Assembly (NCBI GenBank): GCA_904063045.1
Contig: CAJFCJ010000001.1
Location: forward strand, 1,736,001 to 1,800,000
DNA: 64,000 nt
Source of the DNA: Dimorphilus gyrociliatus
Taxonomy: Eukaryota > Animalia > Annelida
Direction of reading: 5' to 3'
In this document: piece after piece, positions 3,901 through 28,658 of the stretch
Layout of the letters: every line of letters starts with the position of its first letter
Numbering within the stretch: position 1 is the stretch's first letter
Program-made: the position numbers and the translations under genes
Notes under the pieces: generated by a model
What the model saw: only the letters and a program-made list of their open reading frames with translations
Told to the model about the DNA's origin: nothing
Databases searched by the model: none

Positions 3901-5362
3901 CGACAAAATTAAATCCATCCTAGGATGAAAAAGCACACAAGATACATTGTTGAAATGTCCTCGACAAGTATCTACTTCCCAAGCTCTTGAATCATTCATT
4001 CTCCATAGTTTAATAGATCTATCATCAGCCCCTGAGACAATTAGTGGCAAAGTTGGATGAAAAGCCACCCAGTTAACTCCTCTGTCATGACCTTCTAGTA
4101 CATGCTTTACAACTGCATCAGTTACTCCAAACAAATTGGCTTGATCTTGTCTCCTACCGTAATCACTCATGATTCCCGGAGAAACGTTCTTCTTTCTAAT
4201 AGCAGAAGTATCCCATACTCGAATCGTCTGATCGAGAGAGCAAGAAACAATGAGATCCTCAGTTGGATGAAATGCAGCACACATTACGTAATGACTATGA
4301 CCTGTTATTACTGTAACACATGATCTATTTTGCCAATTCCAAATACGAATTGTTTGATCATCAGAACAACTTAGAATCCACGGATACTCGTGGTGAAAAG
4401 TCGTCGTGCGAATGTAGTCGAGATGACCAGTTAAGGTGAAGAGACATCTTTTTAGTTTGTAATTCCATATTTTTATCTTGTAATCGTCTCCTCCCGAAAC
4501 GAAAAGAGGCTGCTGATTATGAAAGCAAAGCCCTCTAACCGGACCTGCAGAGTATTTTAGGGATTAAAACTGCATCAACTTCTAATGACAAAATTTTACC
4601 ATCATGCTCATCATATTTATCAATAAGTGTTGCCATTCGATAATCCCAAAGTTGAATGACTCCATTGTGCAGAGAAGCCAAAATCCAAGGTCTTTTCGGG
4701 TGAAAACATAAACCTAAGGAAATAAATAATCAATGGAGTATTGGTTTATTGGCGAAAATATAGAAACGATAAGTATGTTACATATTAGTTGAGTAGCTAA
4801 TATTTTGTTAATTATCTGTACAATTATGAATATTTATATTCATATAAATGATTTTGTGGATTAAACAGTTCAGAAACATATGAAATGATGTGCAATATAT
4901 ACACGTCAACTGCTGGAAAAAAGTACTTACGTATATCAATCGACAAAAAAAACACATTTAGTTTTAACTAACTAGTTTACATCAATTATTGACATATTTA
5001 GTATTTCGTGCTTGTGTTTAGGTAATCAAATTATACACAATAGGGTCAAACGCCTAGAAAAGTTATTTTCACTATATAGCCAAAAATGATTCTATCATTA
5101 TCTTCAAAACTGTCACAAAATGTTGTTTGCTAACACCTTAAACGAACGTGTCAGTTTAGGATTCAAAACCCATATTGGCTGGCTTTTAGTATTTATCCTA
5201 TTGTTATGAATACCAAGCAAATTTGAGAGATAGAGAGTACTATTATATATATATATATATGTAATTTTATGACATTATATAAAATTTCGAATTACATGTA
5301 TATCAAGAAGTATGTAACAAACCTTTTACTCGAGCGCTTTTCGATTCAAATTTTGTCAACAT
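917..5362 (-). CDS. COPA: Coatomer subunit alpha
   Basis: Exon 1 [14 protein letters not shown] (5362-5323), exon 2 from 4713 ([12 protein letters not shown]), giant exon 4544-1322 with WD40 repeats and coatomer domains, and terminal exons ending [10 protein letters not shown] at 917. Confidence 0.97.
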
Positions 5363-13299: not shown

Positions 13300-13482
13300 A
13301 TCTATTCATTTTTAATCAAGAAAAGAAATCATAATGATGTTAATTTAAAAGAAAATCGTTTCTTAATTTCGTTATTTGTAAGCCATGTTTTACCGACCAT
13401 GAACCAGTCTAAAAAGTCAACAGGCAATGGAAACAGCGATTGTGGTAAAAACATAAAGCACTAAGAAGAAAGACTTAAAAAC

Positions 13483-14290
13483 ATGGCTGAGAGAAAAGTT
13501 CTAAATGTAAGTAGCATCTACTTGATAAAATTTGAAACGATTTACTTACATTCACAACTAATTGTAAATTTTCTTAGAAAAACTATCCTCCTGAGTTCGA
13601 TCCTTCGAAATTGCCCAGAGTAAGAAGAGAGCGAAATGCAGTCTTCGAAATCCGTATTATGGCACCCTTTAATATGAGGTTGATTATAATTTAAATAATA
13701 ACAATACCACTAATATTTCATGAGTTGAACAGGTGTAATAATTGCGGAGAATATATTTACAAGGGAAAGAAATTCAATTCCCGTAAAGAAGATGTACCTA
13801 ATGAACGCTATTTGGATTTATATATTTATCGGTTTTACATAAAATGTCCAAGATGTGTATCGGAAATTGCATTTAAGGTTAGTCTTCATACCATATCGAC
13901 AGAAAGATAGCAAACGATTATTGTTCACAGACAGATCCCGAAAATGCTGATTATAAGTTGGAAGCAGGAGCCACTAGAAATTTTGAAGCTCCTGAAACGG
14001 CTAAAAAGGAAGATGATGATAGGAACGCAGTGCAAGTCGTTGAAAACAGGACAAAAACTTCCCAAAAGGAAATAGAAGACTTAAACATCCTACTTTCAAA
14101 TATGGTAAAAAATAATAATCAAGTTAACTAATATACATTTAATGTTTTATAATTTTCTCAGGGAAATGAGGAATCCAAAAAGACAAATCTGCTTAGGAAT
14201 GAAAAAAATGCTTCTAACCTTATGAAGGGAGAAGATCTTAAAGTTCAAAAAACACACGATCAAACCGACACTGAAGAAGAAGGAAGATAG
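13483..14290 (+). CDS. YJU2/CCDC94 partial paralog with an internal in-frame deletion and a shortened C-terminus; reading frame intact over 5 exons
   Basis: MAERKVLN|KNYPPEFDP... with the CxxC...CxxC Zn module retained. Exon 4 is fused to the end of the parental exon 5; the last exon GNEESKK...EEEGR* is open. Confidence 0.8.
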
Positions 14291-14690
14291 TGAACATAAA
14301 ACAAATATAGATATATAGAAGTAAAGATTGAATCAGAAGGTCCTTATTTCTATCTTTAAACTCTTCAATTTCAGAGAAATATTTTATAATAGAAGGGTTA
14401 TGAAAGTGTCAGATAGAAAGCCAGCATTGCTTTTGTGCTTAATGCGAAACGTGCTTCAAGGGCAAAGTCGAAACTCAGTCTCACAATCCAGGTGTTCAAT
14501 GTTAAGAACGCTTAAAATAAACTCCAAGAACAGGTATATGGAAATTATCTTGAAGACCCTATAAGGTACAAAGCGACTCCCAATCAGCATTCGTTACGTT
14601 TAATTGTCCAGTGTAATCATGACAAATTCACTACATGCAAAATTTATTATGCTTTACTAGATTTGAAACTACAAAAAATTAAAATTAAAT

Positions 14691-19962: not shown

Positions 19963-20712
19963 TTAAATATTTATCATAAAAGTTTTATTTCCTGTCGAAA
20001 AAAAAAGCTGATGTAATCTTTCGCGAATCAGAACCTCCTCAGAGTCGATTAGAGATTGTAAAGATTTTAATAATTTACTACTATTTACGTTTTCTTTTAG
20101 ATTACCCAGTGTCCAAGCAACGCTTACATGAAATTTTGGTTCTTCATAATATAATGGCAGTTGATACTCGGCTAATGTTTTATCAACTATATTCGTTGAT
20201 AATTGTAAAAATTCTTTATCATATTCCATCTCAAAAACAATAAAAGATCTTGTCTTCTCATCATTTACTAATATATCCAATTGTGAAGAAAAGCATTCTA
20301 CTGTTTCTATATCACGAAAGTTTTGTTCTAAATCATCACGAAATGATTCAATCAAATGATGTTGTAAAATAAAAGTTTTCGATAAGCTTAAATGAAAATC
20401 CTTAAATAATTTTAGATCAATATTTAATATTTGAGCCTCTGAAATGAACTTTTGAAAGAAGCCTTCTAAATGATCTAAATCAAATTTATAATAAACAAAA
20501 GATGCCCAATTCCCGGCAACGTGTGAAAAAGAACGAACACGTCCCTCATATTTGTTTGAGTGCTCCGTTGAATCATCTCTATCTAGGTTTGCAGCAAAAA
20601 CATCAGGTAGTTCCAATTTAGACACTTGTTTTGACTGTTTTACCGGTGGAATATCTTCATCACTCGATGAAGAATCATAATTAGTTCTTTTTTGAGCGTA
20701 TAGAGATGACAT
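19963..20712 (-). CDS. USB1: U6 snRNA phosphodiesterase 1 (2H family), single exon
   Basis: Two HxS motifs (FHLSLS, FHVSVAW) and the RVRSFSHVAGNWASFVY N-terminal motif. Confidence 0.93.
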   Translation of the reverse strand: MSSLYAQKRTNYDSSSSDEDIPPVKQSKQVSKLELPDVFAANLDRDDSTEHSNKYEGRVRSFSHVAGNWASFVYYKFDLDHLEGFFQKFISEAQILNIDLKLFKDFHLSLSKTFILQHHLIESFRDDLEQNFRDIETVECFSSQLDILVNDEKTRSFIVFEMEYDKEFLQLSTNIVDKTLAEYQLPLYYEEPKFHVSVAWTLGNLKENVNSSKLLKSLQSLIDSEEVLIRERLHQLFFSTGNKTFMINI

Positions 20713-20915
20713 ATCTATTTATTTACATATTTTTAGTAAGAAGGCAATTACCATGAAGTTATCTCAAAAGAAAAACGCACTCCTAATCGTTTCCTAATTT
20801 TGTGATCTGTAAACCATGCTTTATTGACCATGAACCAGTCTAAAAAGTCAACTGGTTATAGTAGCAGCGAAATCGTGGTACAAACGTAAAGCTGTGAGAA
20901 GAAAGGCTTAAAAAC

Positions 20916-22158
20916 ATGACTGAGAGAAAAGTTCTAAATGTAAGTAGCATCTACTTGATAAAATTTGAAACGATTTACTTAAATTCATAACTAATTGTAA
21001 ATTTTAATAGAAATACTATCCTCCTGACTTCGATCCTTCGAAATTGCCCAGAGTAAGAAGAGAGCGAAATGCAGTCTTCGAAATCCGTATTATGGCACCC
21101 TTTAATATGAGGTTGATTATAATTTAAATAATAACAATACCACTAATATTTCATGAGTTGAACAGGTGTAATAATTGCGGAGAATATATTTACAAGGGAA
21201 AGAAATTCAATTCCCGTAAAGAAGATGTACCTAATGAACGCTATTTGGATTTATATATTTATCGGTTTTACATAAAATGTCCAAGATGTGTATCGGAAAT
21301 TGCATTTAAGGTTAGTCTTCATACCATATCGACAGAAAGATAGCAAACGATTATTGTTCACAGACAGATCCCGAAAATGCTGATTATAAGTTGGAAGCAG
21401 GAGCTACTAGAAATTTTGAAGCTCTCAGAACAGCTGAAATTCTAGCCAAAAAGGAAGAAGAAAAAATGAAAGAAGAGGAAGATAATAATCCAATGAAAGT
21501 TCTTGAAAATAGAACAAAAGCTTCACAAAAAGAAATGGAAAATTTAGAGGTTCTGGAAGAAATTAAGCAACAAAATTCAAGACATGCGAAAATGGATCAC
21601 GAAGATATTATTAATCTTCATCAAGCATACGGAGAGCAGCTCAAAAAGCTACAAGACGAAGAAGATGAAAAATTAATTCAGTAAGTTATTCCAAATTGTT
21701 CTTTAAATATTAAACTAACTTAATTTCCTCTAGATCACTATTCAAGAAAAAAGAGCCAATTATTAAACGCTTAAGTGATAATGACGACCAAGAAGAGATA
21801 TCTATTTCAAAGAAATTAAAACTAGGAAACAGCCCCAGTGATGTTCTACTTTCAAATACAGTAAATAATAATAATTAAGTCCAATTAAGACACATTTGAT
21901 GATTTAAAATTTTCTCAGGAAATAAAGAAACCGGAAAAGGCAACTCTGCTAAGCAACCGAAAAAATATTTCCAGCTTTATCAAGAGAAAGGATCCCAAAG
22001 CGGAGAAAAAACCAGTGAAACTAACTGTGAAGAAGGAAGACGGTGAAGATAGTAAAAAAATAGATACTATAGAACTAAAGAATGAATCAAAAGCCCCTGT
22101 TCCTGGGTGCTTATCGCTGTTAAGCGGATATTGTAACACATCGTCTGATTCAGAATAA
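20916..22158 (+). CDS. YJU2: Splicing factor YJU2/CCDC94, full length; 6 exons
   Basis: MTERKVLN|[34 protein letters not shown], and the acidic C-terminus [15 protein letters not shown]. Confidence 0.95.
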
Positions 22159-22436
22159 CTGAATGTATAAAATGTATAAAAATATTGTTTTAATATCATT
22201 TCATATTAGAAGATTGCTTTTATTATCAAAGAAATATATTATTCCTGATGTCAATACTTGAATATTTCTCAAGTAATTCCCCAATCTTCCTATTTTAAAG
22301 AAAGGGAACACTCTTCAAGAAAGCAGCTCATGTCACAAAAATACAAAGAGTGAAATATTAATTATTCGTTCATTTAGGAAAAAATACAAGTGATATTGAC
22401 ATACATGATATTACTAATATATATTGTTCAAAGGTA

Positions 22437-22446
22437 CGCATGCGCA
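22437..22446. promoter_or_regulatory. NRF1-like palindrome CGCATGCGCA upstream of the truncated TOP1 copy
   Basis: Direct sequence match; the flanks are homologous to the same site at 25761. Confidence 0.6.
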
Positions 22447-22508
22447 GTTGCGAATATCTACAACTAATTTAGAGAGCAAGCATTGCTAAAGCTATTTAAT
22501 TCTCAGAA

Positions 22509-23246
22509 ATGGCTACAAAAACAGAAGACAAAGTTAGGTGGAATTTTCTAGAACATAATGGAGTCGTTTTTGCTCCAGACTATGAGCGAATTCCAGATGA
22601 TGTTAGATTTTCTTATAACGGAGAGATTATGAAGCTGTCTGAAGCTGCTGAGGAGATGGCAACTTTCTATGCCAAGATGTTGGGTCACGATTACGCCTCT
22701 AAGAAGATTTTCAATGACAACTTCTTTAGAGATTGGAGAAAAACAATGACAACAGAGGAACGTTTAAAAATAACTGATTTATCGAAATGCGATTTTAGAG
22801 AGATGCATGAATACTTTCTGAAAAAGACTGAAGAGCGAAAAGCAATGACCAAGGAAGAGAAGCAAGAAATTAAAAAGAAAAATGAAGAAATTATGAAAGA
22901 ATATGGTTTTTATACTATTGATGGACGTACTGAAAAAATTGGCAACTTTAAAATTGAACCGCCAGGATTATTCAGAGGTAGAGGTGACCATCCTAAACAG
23001 GGATGCCTAAAGAAACGTGTACAACCAGAAGATGTCATTATCAACTGTTCAAAAGACTCAAAAATTCCGGAAGCTCCCCCTGGACATAAATGGAAAGAGG
23101 TTCGACACGACAACACAGTTACCTGGTTAGCGTGTTGGACCGACAACATTCAAGGACATATTAAATACATGATGCAAAGTACCATCGATAATCAAAGCAC
23201 TTTTAACATTGAAAAACTGGAAATCAGTTCAGAAGACAAAAAATAA
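22509..23246 (+). CDS. Truncated TOP1 paralog encoding only the DNA-binding cap (core subdomains I-II), intronless, 245 aa
   Basis: Aligns to TOP1 from KWNFLEHKG to KYVML, then an unrelated 20-aa tail. None of the catalytic residues are present; the ORF is uninterrupted. Confidence 0.8.
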   Translation: MATKTEDKVRWNFLEHNGVVFAPDYERIPDDVRFSYNGEIMKLSEAAEEMATFYAKMLGHDYASKKIFNDNFFRDWRKTMTTEERLKITDLSKCDFREMHEYFLKKTEERKAMTKEEKQEIKKKNEEIMKEYGFYTIDGRTEKIGNFKIEPPGLFRGRGDHPKQGCLKKRVQPEDVIINCSKDSKIPEAPPGHKWKEVRHDNTVTWLACWTDNIQGHIKYMMQSTIDNQSTFNIEKLEISSEDKK

Positions 23247-23389
23247 TGCAGAAAGGGGGAGAAGAAGGAGAATCTATGTTCAATTATTTTATTGCTGTTT
23301 ATTCATTCCAGAAATATGAAAGCTATTTTATATATAACAAGTAATTTAATACTACATTTCTATACGATGTAAATAGGCTGTTCAATGAT

Positions 23390-24871
23390 TTATAGAATAG
23401 GTGTTGAATCGTTCCATTCGACTCTTGCATCTTTCCATTTGGTTCTAATACATAACTCCAAAGGTGGCACTAACTCTTCACCCTCTTTTTCTGGTGGAAC
23501 ATAATTTTTCTCGGTGGTGATAATAGTAAGCCGAATTTCGTTTAGTTGATTACTAAGACCATCATAATAGAACAAATCAAAGAATCTTTCAGCTTTCCAA
23601 TCATTCACTAGAGCTTTATTAGTGCTAAATAAAACGCTATAATGACTCTCGGAGCAGATCAACCATATAGGAGATTTCGGAGTTTTTAGATAACTTCCTA
23701 CTTCAACACTACGATAATGGTCAAAGAGTGAAAGCATTCCTATTATCTGTCTTTGATCAATTCCTTTCAAAATTAAATCATCTAAGCTTTTGTTATCGTT
23801 AAATGTATTTGAACAAGCTCTACCAGTGAGTAAAAGATTCACTAATTCTTGAGAGCAGTAATTATGAGATGCTATTAAACACTTATCTACTTCATCCATA
23901 TCTCTTTTTACCGTTCTTATTGATCTGGAAAGTATTACGCTGTAAATAATTAATAAAACTCCACCCTCTGCTATAAATGAGTCTATGTGCTGTTCTATGT
24001 AGCTTTCCAATTCGTTTATATTTTTGCAGGTGTGAATATTCAATTTTTCTGTAATACTATCGTGAGGAAGATTGACCGTCGATGGAATGTGAGGAGTTCT
24101 ACCTTTTATGCATACACTGCCCGTTCTTCCTTCACCAGCCGACCAGATCATATGCAAAATAGCTTTAATCAATGATTTCTTTATCAAAACAGGATTCCTT
24201 AGACGCTCTGAACGCATACTATCACCGCTCATTTCAGAGAAAAGTAAATAGTACAGTAACCAAGCTTGAATGGCAGCTAACGCACCACAAGGCCCACCCT
24301 TTCTTTGCACAATTCCATAAAGTAGTTTAGGCTCTTCATTAAAAGCTATATCTTGTTCAACCCACTCTGCCGACCAACAAACAGAACTACTCTTTAACAA
24401 TAGCCGACGAAGATCCCGAGCAGTTTGTACTTCAATAGGCTTTCCAACTATTTTTTGTATTGTTGGGCAAGGTTTAGTACACTGAACAAGGGGAGGAGCT
24501 AATGGCTCGATTTCGTCATTATCAAAATCTTCTAATTCAGTCTGAACAATAGGATTTGCTTGGAGATCATTTAAAGGTGTTTCTTTAGGTATAGAATCTG
24601 TCAGAAAAGTAGGAGAAACTGCAGAAGTAGGTGGGGACTGAGAATTCTCTTGCTTGATACACTTCCCTTTGGCAATACGTCGTTTATTGGGAAAAACAGT
24701 GGGAGCTGTGTCTGCGGGGGGTTTTGGTTTCCCTAATATACCACCATATTCGTTTCCATATTCCAAAGAGCCCTCTTCCGATGCATCGTCTAAAACCAAA
24801 TCGGTCGACTGGCTTTTCCTAAGTTGATCACGAATTTGACGAACATTGGATGCTAATTTAAAACAAAACAA
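23390..24871 (-). CDS. MINDY-family deubiquitinase (MINDY4/FAM188B-like); upstream exons not resolved
   Basis: GGPCGALAAIQA catalytic Cys motif, SESHYSVLF His motif, FDLFYYDGL, and LELCIRTKW at the C-terminus. Confidence 0.85.
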   Translation of the reverse strand: MFCFKLASNVRQIRDQLRKSQSTDLVLDDASEEGSLEYGNEYGGILGKPKPPADTAPTVFPNKRRIAKGKCIKQENSQSPPTSAVSPTFLTDSIPKETPLNDLQANPIVQTELEDFDNDEIEPLAPPLVQCTKPCPTIQKIVGKPIEVQTARDLRRLLLKSSSVCWSAEWVEQDIAFNEEPKLLYGIVQRKGGPCGALAAIQAWLLYYLLFSEMSGDSMRSERLRNPVLIKKSLIKAILHMIWSAGEGRTGSVCIKGRTPHIPSTVNLPHDSITEKLNIHTCKNINELESYIEQHIDSFIAEGGVLLIIYSVILSRSIRTVKRDMDEVDKCLIASHNYCSQELVNLLLTGRACSNTFNDNKSLDDLILKGIDQRQIIGMLSLFDHYRSVEVGSYLKTPKSPIWLICSESHYSVLFSTNKALVNDWKAERFFDLFYYDGLSNQLNEIRLTIITTEKNYVPPEKEGEELVPPLELCIRTKWKDARVEWNDSTPIL

Positions 24872-25760
24872 CGTACGTATTAGGTAGCATGATTAGATAG
24901 AAGCGAAACTTAACTTGTTTTTCCCTTGAACATGATTGAACTTAAATGAAGAGGAAAGGGGGAGTGAGGGAGGGATAGGAATACATTGAGTTAACATATC
25001 TTCCTTATTTAAGATAATATTACCAATTAAGATTGTTTTTTTTAGTATTATGTAATTTAGTACAATTTATGTTAGTAATTTTACAACCATTTAAGTCTAG
25101 TACGAAAAATCAAGTAACCTAAAATATTGCAACATTATTTAAAAAAATGGAAAAGACGTATTGAAACGTTTAAATATAAAAATCGAAGATTGGATTATAT
25201 TGAGTATTGAAGATAGTATGTCAAATTTTAATCCATTTTAAATATTACTATGTTCTCAATCATGATAATTATGTATACTTATCGAATGCGTTTGAGCTTT
25301 GTAAATTAATTTATCTACCTGCAAAAACCATTTGCTTTCCGCTATCCATTGCTTTATAGACTTCATTGAAGGTCAGGGACGTTGTTAAGATAAACAACTT
25401 TAATCTGATTTTCGGCTTGTACAAGCATGGCGAAAATTTTTTTACTATATTAAAAATTGCTAAGTAGGCAATGTTTTTTAAAGTAATAAAGTGTAATATA
25501 TTATAAGTCATTTTCTTTGTGAATTACAAAATATTACTTAATAAGACGTAACAAAGAAACAGGACAATGCTTAAACTTAGTATGAAATGTCGCTTTTTTT
25601 GTAGATATTGAAATGAAAGGTTGTATTGAAAAAATAATAAAATAGACTGCGCTGCTCTCGATAAATGGCATATACAAACACTTGTGTCAAAAAAAATAAA
25701 TTCAAGTTCCCGCCTTCAAAACTCTTGTGTCGCCATCTATGATTTCAATATAAAAGGGAA

Positions 25761-25770
25761 CGCATGCGCA
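25761..25770. promoter_or_regulatory. NRF1-like palindrome CGCATGCGCA in the MINDY4/TOP1 divergent promoter
   Basis: Direct sequence match 91 bp upstream of the TOP1 ATG. Confidence 0.6.
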
Positions 25771-25860
25771 GTTGGCCATATCTGGAACTTTGCCATCACA
25801 GCCGACGCCATAACGAAAATCATAAAGATCAGCACATTTCGAAATTAAGTTACCTAGATC

Positions 25861-28658
25861 ATGGAGACCAGCGACTTTTCTAACGGTGACGTAAGTATAC
25901 GATTTAGAGCTTTGCTTGAAAATTAATGCTATACCCTTAAATGGAATTAAAATGCCTTAATAACTAGTTAGTCGGCGGTTTTAGAGACCGCGTTGTCTAG
26001 AGCAAAATGGCTGAAAATTTCAGAGTCCCACGCCGCTCAAGCAAACTATGTTATTTTGGAATTTTAGTCATTTAATTTTATTTCTACTTCATTTTGGACA
26101 TATAATAAAACATATTTTGCATGTTTCAGATGTTGTTCGACACCAGACGAGGTGGTTTGTGTTTACTTATTAAATTGACACAAAATATTAATTACTTATA
26201 TGATTCCCTAATAAATGTGTGCATATAGATGATTATACAAGAACTAACGGGGAAAAACACGAAAAACATAAAAAAAAGGAGCATAAAAAGCACAAAAGCC
26301 ATAAGCACGACCGGGAAAAGGACAAAGACCGCAAAAGTTCGTCTGATAGACACAAGCACCGTCATTCCGATAAGGTAAAGCGTGAACATGAGGACGGACA
26401 CGAAATGAAGATAAAAGTTGAGACTGTAAGTCCTATGAAAACTCGAGAAGATGAGGATGATTATGACGATGTACCTTTGGTAAAACAATTTTATATAACA
26501 AAGTAACGATAATGACGTAATATTGTTTTTTTAGACTAAACGAATTAAGGTAAAAAAAGAGCACGGTGAAGAGAGTAAAATGTATGTAGTAATCATCATT
26601 ATATAAGTGAATAATTCAATAAACCGAATGAATATATTTGTACAGAAAAGAAAAGAAGGCGAAAAAGAGGAAAAATGAAGGAAATTCATTAGAGTCTCCA
26701 GTAAGCTTTATTATTACATTATGGTTTTTTTTTTAATTTTCTTCTTATTCTGGCAAAGGAGAGAAAAATCAAAAAAGAAGTCAAGACCAAAGATGGATCT
26801 CCAAAGAAAGGTAGAAAGAAAAAGGACGAAGAGGTAGAAAAATGGAAATGGTGGGAAGAGGATAGAAGAGAGGACGGTGTTAAATGGAATTTTCTCGAAC
26901 ATAAAGGCGTCGTTTTTGCTCCAGACTATGAGCGAATTCCAGATGATGTTAGATTTTCTTATAACGGAAAGATTATGAAGCTGTCTGAAACTGCCGAGGA
27001 GGTGGCAACTTTCTATGCCAAGATGTTGGATCACGACTATACCTCTAAGAAGATTTTCAATGACAACTTCTTTAGAGATTGGAGAAAAACAATGACAACA
27101 GAGGAACGTTTAAAAATAACTGATTTATCGAAATGCGATTTTAGAGAGATGCATGAATACTTTCTGAAAAAGACTGAAGAGCGAAAAGCAATGACCAAGG
27201 AAGAGAAGCAAGAAATTAAAAAGAAAAATGAAGAAATTATGAAAGAATATGGTTTTTGTAAAATTGATGGACATACCGAAAAAATTGGCAACTTTAAAAT
27301 TGAACCTCCCGCTTTGTTTAGAGGTAGAGGTGACCATCCTAAACAGGGCTGCCTAAAGAAACGTGTACAACCAGAAGATGTCATTATCAACTGTTCAAAA
27401 GACTCAAAAATTCCGGAAGCTCCCCCTGGACATAAATGGAAAGAGGTTCGACACGACAACACAGTTACCTGGTTAGCGAGTTGGACCGAAAATGTTCAGG
27501 GACAAACAAAATATGTAATGCTCAATGCCAGTTCGAAATTAAAAGGAGAAAAAGACTGGATGAAATACGAAACTGCTCGTCGACTTCATCAAAGGATAGA
27601 AAAAATTAGACAAGAATATCGAGACGATCTCAAGAACAAAGAAATGAGAATTCGTCAAAGAGCTGTTGCTATGTATTTTATAGATAAATTGGCATTGAGA
27701 GCTGGTAATGAGAAGGATGAAGAACAAGCTGACACAGTCGGTTGCTGCTCTTTGCGTGTTGAGCACATAACGCTTCACCCTAATAAGGACGGAAAGGAAT
27801 TTGTGGTTGAGTTCGATTTCCTTGGAAAAGATTGTATTCGTTATTATAATTGTGTTCCGGTTGAGAAGAAAGTTTTCAAGAATTTACAAATATTTATGGA
27901 AAATAAGCAAAAAGGCGATGATCTGTTCGATCGATTGAATACAGCGATTTTGAACAAACACTTGAACAGTCTTATGGATGGCCTCACTGCCAAAGTTTTT
28001 AGAACATACAATGCCTCAGTTACCTTGCAATCGCAACTGGATCAATTAACCGTTTCAGATGACAATATAACAAAAAAACTTCTATCTTTCAATCGGGCTA
28101 ACAGGGCTGTCGCTATTCTTTGTAACCATCAAAGATCCGTACCAAAAACATTCGAAAAATCAATGGAAAGACTTCAAGAGAAGATTGAGGCCAAAAAGGA
28201 GGCTATACGCGCTTGTAAGAAAGAAGTTAAAGATGCTAAAGCAGAATATAAACAAACTGGGTACATAATTTATTTGTAATTTTAAATACCCCTCGTAATT
28301 TTACCTTTAAATTTCATCAGATCTGATAAGGCTGGCACCGCTTATGAGAAGAAGAAGAAGCAGTTACAACGCCTTGAAGAGCAACTGGCAAAGCTTGAAA
28401 TGACTGCCACTGACAAAGATGAGGGTAAAGAAATTGCACTTGGAACTTCCAAGTTGAATTATTTGGATCCAAGAATATCAGTTGCTTGGTTGGTATTTTA
28501 TTGTAAAATAGAATTATCTTTATGCTAAATTTCATTTAAATTTTAAAATCTTCAGGTGCAAGAAATGGGAAGTACCAATTGAAAAGGTTTACAATAAAAC
28601 ACAAAGGGATAAATTTGCTTGGGCTATTGAAATGGCTGGAGAAGACTTCTCCTTTTAG
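25861..28658 (+). CDS. TOP1: DNA topoisomerase I (type IB), full length
   Basis: K/H-rich N-terminus, [24 protein letters not shown] and the catalytic SKLNYLDPR; last exon ends EDFSF* at 28658. Confidence 0.97.

Follow-up and report, generated by a model that had tools for sequence, protein, structure and literature searches.

A 26-kDa fragment of yeast Top1 (PDB 1OIS) and a human cap fragment called "topo31," credited to Lue et al. in 1995 and to Yang and Champoux in 2002, were reportedly made in vitro. These laboratory fragments, whether proteolytic or recombinant, comprise core subdomains I and II only, do not contain catalytic residues, and are known to fold alone. In kinetoplastids, topoisomerase I (TOP1) consists of two subunits split at the linker; the large subunit retains the cap along with most catalytic residues, and activity depends on both pieces. 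Human TOP1P1 and TOP1P2, finally, are processed pseudogenes, i.e., mRNA retrocopies.

The window, a 64,000-nucleotide stretch of the genome of the annelid Dimorphilus gyrociliatus, contains an open reading frame (ORF) that is restricted to the TOP1 cap and is located 4.3 kb upstream of a complete TOP1 gene. Its extent is that of 1OIS and topo31, but rather than being a laboratory product, it is encoded separately in the genome, has a start codon of its own, and ends in a new tail of 20 residues. Similarly, it resembles TOP1P1 and TOP1P2 in being noncatalytic, TOP1-derived sequence outside the functional gene and differs from them in its promoter DNA, its lack of a poly(A) tract, its proximity to the parent, and its open frame. 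As in kinetoplastids, TOP1 sequence is encoded in separate pieces, although D. gyrociliatus still has an entire TOP1 gene, to which the additional piece is redundant. With partial, truncated segmental duplicates subject to gene conversion, such as human STAT5A/B or TLR1/6 with their conversion tracts, the locus shares a nearby paralogous block, mosaic identity including identical tracts, a start or stop recruited from the flanks, and an origin in one lineage. Unlike other partial duplicates, however, this one has the essential TOP1 gene as its parent, and the duplicated block happens to be a single structural module, joined to a promoter fragment that lies 1.07 kb farther upstream in the parent. 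We consider the cap copy to be a young, lineage-specific partial TOP1 duplicate that is weakly constrained or unconstrained and possibly transcribed (probability, roughly 0.65).

The cap ORF, its parent gene, and the duplication junctions

A Pfam search with the 245-residue product returned a single domain, Topoisom_I_N (PF02919), at residues 9 to 222, matching positions 1 to 212 of the 213-position profile (E = 8e-97). No Pfam match in the cap ORF was obtained to PF01028, the catalytic core with the Arg-Lys-Arg-His residues, and the C-terminal domain with the active-site tyrosine was not found, the ORF ending 20 codons past the junction in a tail without TOP1 homology. Since that homology ends at KYMM (the KY[I/V]M motif), at approximately human residue 428, and the five catalytic residues lie beyond residue 433, all five are missing; so are the lysine-rich N-terminal exons of TOP1 (25861 to 26850). 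In a comparison with structure databases, the cap ORF matched human TOP1 (E = 1e-99); residues 1 to 220 of 1OIS, the 223-residue yeast Top1 fragment, aligned with ORF residues 7 to 222 (E = 4e-69), and the kinetoplastid two-subunit enzyme (PDB 2B9S) was also among the matches. These alignments support the view that the predicted protein almost exactly equals the independently folding cap fragment, i.e., core subdomains I and II. An AlphaFold2 model based on a shallow 14-sequence alignment had a mean pLDDT of 73.7, with values above 90 in the helical subdomain II and below 40 for residues 221 to 245; the C-terminal tail includes QSTIDNQSTFNIEK. A preliminary description of the locus had reported an uninterrupted, cap-only ORF of 245 amino acids that corresponds to core subdomains I and II and lacks both the catalytic motifs and the lysine-rich N-terminal exons, and the complete Topoisom_I_N domain, found with no other domain beside it, together with the comparisons above, bears this out on each point.

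TABLE 1 Features of the cap copy, its parent gene, and their surroundings (positions in the window)
Feature	Position	Strand	Remarks
Full-length YJU2 gene	20872..22157	+	Directly upstream of the cap ORF; sits in an interval that is empty in the relative
Fragment (~70 nt) derived from the TOP1 promoter	22397..22465	+	Contains NRF1-type site ACGCATGCGCAGTTG at 22436 to 22450; matches parent promoter
Leader and first three codons of the cap ORF	22466..22517	+	No recognizable TOP1 homology; ATG at 22509
Cap-only ORF	22509..23246	+	245 amino acids; ATG start, TAA stop; Topoisom_I_N only
Duplicated block in the cap ORF	~22518..23190	+	In frame and ungapped relative to parent 26864 to 27536
Tract identical to parent, 216 nt	22696..22911	+	Read as gene conversion; ~12 differences expected at mean rate
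Tract identical to parent, 129 nt	23004..23132	+	Read as gene conversion; ~7 differences expected at mean rate
New C-terminal tail (QSTIDN...EDKK) and stop	23175..23246	+	Read from a shifted frame or from sequence foreign to TOP1; disorder predicted
Parental TOP1 promoter segment	25754..25789	+	Same NRF1-type site; sequence match
Full-length parental TOP1 gene	25861..28658	+	Multiexon with several short introns; large exon at ~26759 to 28260; boundaries read by eye
Parental source block	26864..27536	+	Wholly within the TOP1 large exon

Both the cap and the greater part of the catalytic core are encoded in the large exon of the parent gene. Throughout the duplicated block, the offset between copy and parent is constant at 4,346 nucleotides, and identity amounts to 94.4% between positions 22536 and 23174, with 36 differences. 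When the complete 77.9-Mb assembly was searched in all six frames, cap-like sequence was located at only two places, the cap ORF and the parent gene. At the 5' junction, in-frame similarity is traceable to approximately position 22518 (TEDKVRW, compared to REDGVKW in the parent). Only one of the nine bases at 22509 to 22517 matches the parent at the same offset, the junction homology here being weak and suggestive, and the ATG, 9 nucleotides outside the junction, therefore derives from non-TOP1 sequence. At the 3' junction, identity falls sharply past position 23170; the introduction of a 2-nucleotide gap at approximately 23186 suggests further similarity, with some 20 matches in 29 positions, up to approximately 23200, and this junction possibly carries a frameshifting deletion of 2 nucleotides. 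Beyond that point, nothing resembling TOP1 sequence from farther downstream was found, so that the last ~20 residues and the stop codon represent out-of-frame or foreign sequence. While the new, in-frame ATG was correctly placed in the preliminary description right at the start of the core, just outside the 5' junction, the "domain-precise" ends claimed there are simply the junctions of the duplication, the one on the 3' side possibly frameshifted.

Separately, the parental gene has an alanine codon at 27311 to 27313 in place of the glycine of the PPGLFRGRG lip (approximately human G359). Twelve other animals and the relative discussed below all have the glycine, which the truncated copy retains as well.

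The syntenic locus in a relative and the TOP1-derived promoter piece

Searching with the parental large exon alone, rather than with the spliced TOP1 protein, we found the closest available relative in Logan contigs of SRR23372228 and neighboring runs, in the form of a 494-amino-acid TOP1 ORF with 87% identity. Gene order in the relative's 53.7-kb contig (L011) is the same as in the window through HVSL (USB1-like), MINDY3, TOP1, a WD40 gene, and CNOT1. In L011, HVSL ends at position 2378 and MINDY is found at 2787, leaving a gap of 408 nucleotides; the equivalent interval in the window (20712 to 23390) spans 2,677 nucleotides and holds a full-length YJU2 gene and the cap ORF. Neither the cap block nor YJU2 had a match in the 408-nucleotide gap or elsewhere in L011 outside TOP1. 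The paralogous block thus lies near its parent in D. gyrociliatus and is missing at the syntenic site of the outgroup. A search of 5.8 billion proteins, in the range of 135 to 429 amino acids, also yielded no ortholog, the best nonself match being 72% identical to the cap ORF. Given that nothing was found in the relative's locus and no database protein exceeded 72% identity, the cap ORF is specific to the D. gyrociliatus lineage. The preliminary description had proposed a search for proteins with Topoisom_I_N only; all three that we sampled from the database (P0009, P0027, and P0041) turned out to be the exons that precede the catalytic exons of an ordinary, complete TOP1 gene, and no precedent for a cap-only TOP1 gene was found in the protein collection searched.

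The extra DNA in the HVSL-MINDY3 interval consists wholly of copies from within 8 kb, namely, YJU2, the promoter piece, and the cap block. Judged by sequence, such a make-up is the pattern that local multitemplate rearrangement would be expected to leave.

The best local alignment between the upstream flank of the copy and the 5' region of TOP1 pairs positions 22430 to 22465 with 25754 to 25789, with identity at 29 of 36 positions; upstream of this 36-mer, weaker similarity, requiring a 10-nucleotide gap, extends to approximately 22397. Its core, CGCATGCGCA, which we take to resemble an NRF1-type site, occurs at 516 sites genome-wide, compared to 15 for the reversed control (a 34-fold difference for the 10-mer core), with window sites at 22437 and 25761, and probably serves this genome as one of its main core-promoter motifs. 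Since the core is thus a genome-wide, promoter-type motif, the argument for homology rests on its flanks, and these share no bases between the two TOP1 sites and six other instances of the motif. In addition, there are only three exact occurrences of the 15-mer ACGCATGCGCAGTTG in 77.9 Mb, two of them being the sites of the copy and the parent, and of seven positions at which the parent promoter differs from that of the relative, the copy has the parental state at five and the relative's at one. We therefore rejected a chance match of a common motif as the whole explanation, and the homology to the TOP1 promoter asserted in the preliminary description holds. Because the copy shares derived states specific to the parent, the promoter piece was copied after the species split. 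The sources of promoter piece and block lie 1.07 kb apart in the parent, and their copies lie ~50 nucleotides apart.

As a side observation, the palindromic, NRF1-like core CGCATGCGCA often appears as ACGCATGCGCAG. The conserved TOP1 5' untranslated region, common to the parent and the relative, is missing in the cap copy. Together with the first codons, this region (25783 to 25875, compared to approximately 5085 to 5185 in L011) is ~93% identical between the two species, the corresponding value for the coding block being 79%, which suggests that the TOP1 leader might be a conserved regulatory sequence.

Several features of the copy are those of a gene. The promoter element is located 73 nucleotides before the ATG, which stands in a good Kozak context (cagaaATGG), and there is no other ATG between the promoter motif and the start codon. 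Despite ~21 substitutions on the branch of the copy, its 245 codons are free of stops and frameshifts; by rough estimates, the chances of this are 0.25 for the absence of a stop and 0.15 to 0.3 for the absence of a frameshift. However, there is an ascertainment effect in that the ORF was flagged for being intact, and among many partial duplicates, some are intact by chance. Because NCBI, UniRef, and nr all contain the exact 245-amino-acid sequence, the cap ORF is an annotated gene model. According to the D. gyrociliatus genome paper, gene models were built on transcriptome data combined with ab initio prediction, and operons and trans-splicing are absent (PMC7854359); a topoisomerase entry was not found in its supplementary tables. 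On the basis of the promoter element and the annotated model, the cap copy may well be transcribed.

Direct reading of the plus strand between the cap stop codon and the convergent MINDY gene revealed no AATAAA or ATTAAA. On the minus strand, two AATAAA poly(A) signals of MINDY3 are found at 23270 to 23320, ~50 to 70 nucleotides from the cap stop codon, and any cap transcript would for that reason overlap the 3' end of MINDY3 in antisense.

Substitution pattern and gene conversion

The substitutions in the block were polarized with the TOP1 sequence of the relative, leaving two ambiguous sites. With 515.3 nonsynonymous and 120.7 synonymous sites as denominators, the copy branch (16 nonsynonymous and 5 synonymous changes) has an omega of ~0.75 and the parent branch (3 and 10, respectively) an omega of ~0.07. 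The two branches differ (one-sided Fisher's exact test, hand calculation, P of ~0.003), whereas the copy's 16 nonsynonymous changes out of 21 do not depart from the neutral expectation of 0.81 (hand calculation, P of ~0.37). The rough confidence interval of the copy's omega is wide (~0.26 to 2.7), a span that includes moderate purifying selection. The pairwise dN/dS between copy and parent, 0.22, averages both branches.

In the alignment of 14 animal sequences, the derived state lies with the copy in approximately 12 changes (DGH to DGR, TEN to TDN, and LDH to LGH among them) and with the parent in one, PPG to PPA. Three of the copy-specific changes (DGH to DGR, TEN to TDN, and DG-K to DK-K) fall in columns that are at least 90% conserved across animals; the copy has lost none of the residues that are invariant in the alignment, the FRGRG-HPK lip and KY among them. 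The copy probably evolves at a rate close to neutral, with little or no constraint at the protein level. A dN/dS analysis had been proposed in the preliminary description as a check and, run over the block, gave a value for the copy that is indistinguishable from neutrality, next to the tenfold-lower one of the parent. The role put forward there, that of a maintained DNA-binding or decoy module or a dominant-negative regulator, is unsupported and moderately disfavored by the neutral-like ratio of 16 to 5, the altered conserved columns, and the lack of an ortholog.

Between positions 22536 and 23174, the differences between copy and parent are not scattered evenly but cluster in three islands (22537 to 22695, 22912 to 23003, and 23133 onward, to 23174), which show 8 to 35% divergence and are separated by the two identical tracts listed in Table 1. 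Synonymous divergence in the islands rises from 0.21 to 0.51 and 1.4 toward the 3' edge. This mosaic of identity points to gene conversion between the two copies, 4.3 kb apart, of which it would be the signature. The neighboring gene, YJU2 (Saf4_Yju2), is present as a whole-gene duplicate pair (13354 to 14400 and 20785 to 22157) with a tract of ~390 nucleotides that contains one mismatch and spans two introns, flanked by sequence of 75 to 85% identity; the copy at ~13 kb has internal deletions of ~30 and ~290 nucleotides and a different 3' end. Since this near-identical tract includes introns, conversion appears to be active at the locus. Gene conversion provides a nonselective way to hold the cap frame open, so that the open frame might be explained without selection. 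The same mosaic in YJU2 also bears on the earlier proposal that the locus "generates single-domain derivatives," as a better reading of both cases is that sequences were duplicated locally and then underwent decay and gene conversion.

Origin and standing of the cap copy

To account for the young partial duplicate, we propose that a promoter piece and a 673-nucleotide stretch of the TOP1 large exon were placed in the intergenic gap between HVSL and MINDY3, together with or next to the YJU2 gene copy. This might have occurred through one duplication followed by a deletion of ~1 kb or, alternatively, through a replication switch involving multiple templates. The flanking sequence would by chance have supplied an in-frame ATG 9 nucleotides before the junction and a stop codon 20 codons after the other. 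From then on, the copy would have been under little or no constraint at the protein level, and recurrent conversion with the parent, at a distance of 4.3 kb, would have rehomogenized its center and helped to hold the frame open. At present, we infer, it is most likely a young proto-gene or a decaying fragment without a selected function. The preliminary description had proposed duplication plus deletion at the DNA level, as opposed to retrocopying; the DNA-level origin stands, given the promoter fragment, but the ~1-kb deletion is one of two possible routes.

Three other origins were considered and rejected. A retrocopy is contradicted by the presence of promoter DNA, the lack of an A-tract after the ORF, and the local position of the copy; exons 1 to 4 are missing, and the block lies within one parental exon, so that intron removal is uninformative. 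Transposon capture, of the Helitron or Pack-MULE type, does not agree with the finding that the 2.7-kb insert and its spacers match only the two local paralogues genome-wide. Finally, for the cap ORF to be an exon of TOP1 or YJU2, whether alternative or mutually exclusive, no in-phase donor-acceptor pair could be read, and an in-frame stop lies 4 codons before the ATG.

A pairwise omega of 0.22, i.e., below the ~0.5 to be expected with full neutrality of one copy, would fit a functional, selected cap-only paralogue, a 28-kDa, noncatalytic protein folded like the cap that might bind DNA or compete with the cap or the partner proteins of TOP1 as a decoy or as a dominant-negative modulator, but the copy's own omega is ten times that of the parent and not different from 1. 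Likewise, the retention of every invariant residue has to be set against replacements at conserved positions, and the intact ORF with its complete Topoisom_I_N domain against an open frame that conversion can explain. The promoter-derived element, the good start context, the annotated gene model, and the equivalence to 1OIS, a standalone fragment that has been crystallized, also speak for such a paralogue; the lack of a canonical poly(A) signal and the absence from the relative and the databases searched speak against it, and altogether we consider it unlikely. Distinctly unlikely, in our view, is a newly born, expressed cap-only TOP1 (a "natural topo31") that does not cut but binds DNA or TOP1 partners and modulates topoisomerase I or the sensitivity to camptothecin-type compounds, in which case the relaxed constraint would reflect the loss of its interfaces to the catalytic half.

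The steep climb in identity from the edges to the center, the mere 81% identity of the promoter piece, and the same pattern in the YJU2 pair could also be read as signs of an old duplicate that has persisted solely as a conversion partner of TOP1, with the diverged edges (20 to 35%) giving its true age and the ORF being an epiphenomenon of recurrent copying from its functional parent; such a partner may occasionally donate variants back to the parent. We regard this as very unlikely, since the promoter shares parent-derived states and the copy is missing in the relative, so that it is not older than the split, and since the divergence of the edges is partly inflated by the junction and the possible frameshift; moreover, the reading largely overlaps with the young partial duplicate preferred here. 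An assembly artifact, whether a chimeric join or a misplaced read pile, is hardly credible for a sequence with 36 fixed differences, unique flanks on both sides, and a truncated structure that is located inside a 3.6-Mb contig and whose ORF was modeled in an independent public annotation.

The cap copy cautions against inferring function from an "intact and domain-precise" ORF alone. Given both expression and selection, it would rank as the first gene in nature for the topoisomerase I clamp module on its own, a ready-made system in which to ask whether a free cap disturbs the enzyme. As matters stand, its main value is as a clean and datable case of the way in which partial duplication, a recruited start and stop, and gene conversion can yield and preserve an ORF the size of a domain, derived from an essential gene, where the animal genome is very compact.
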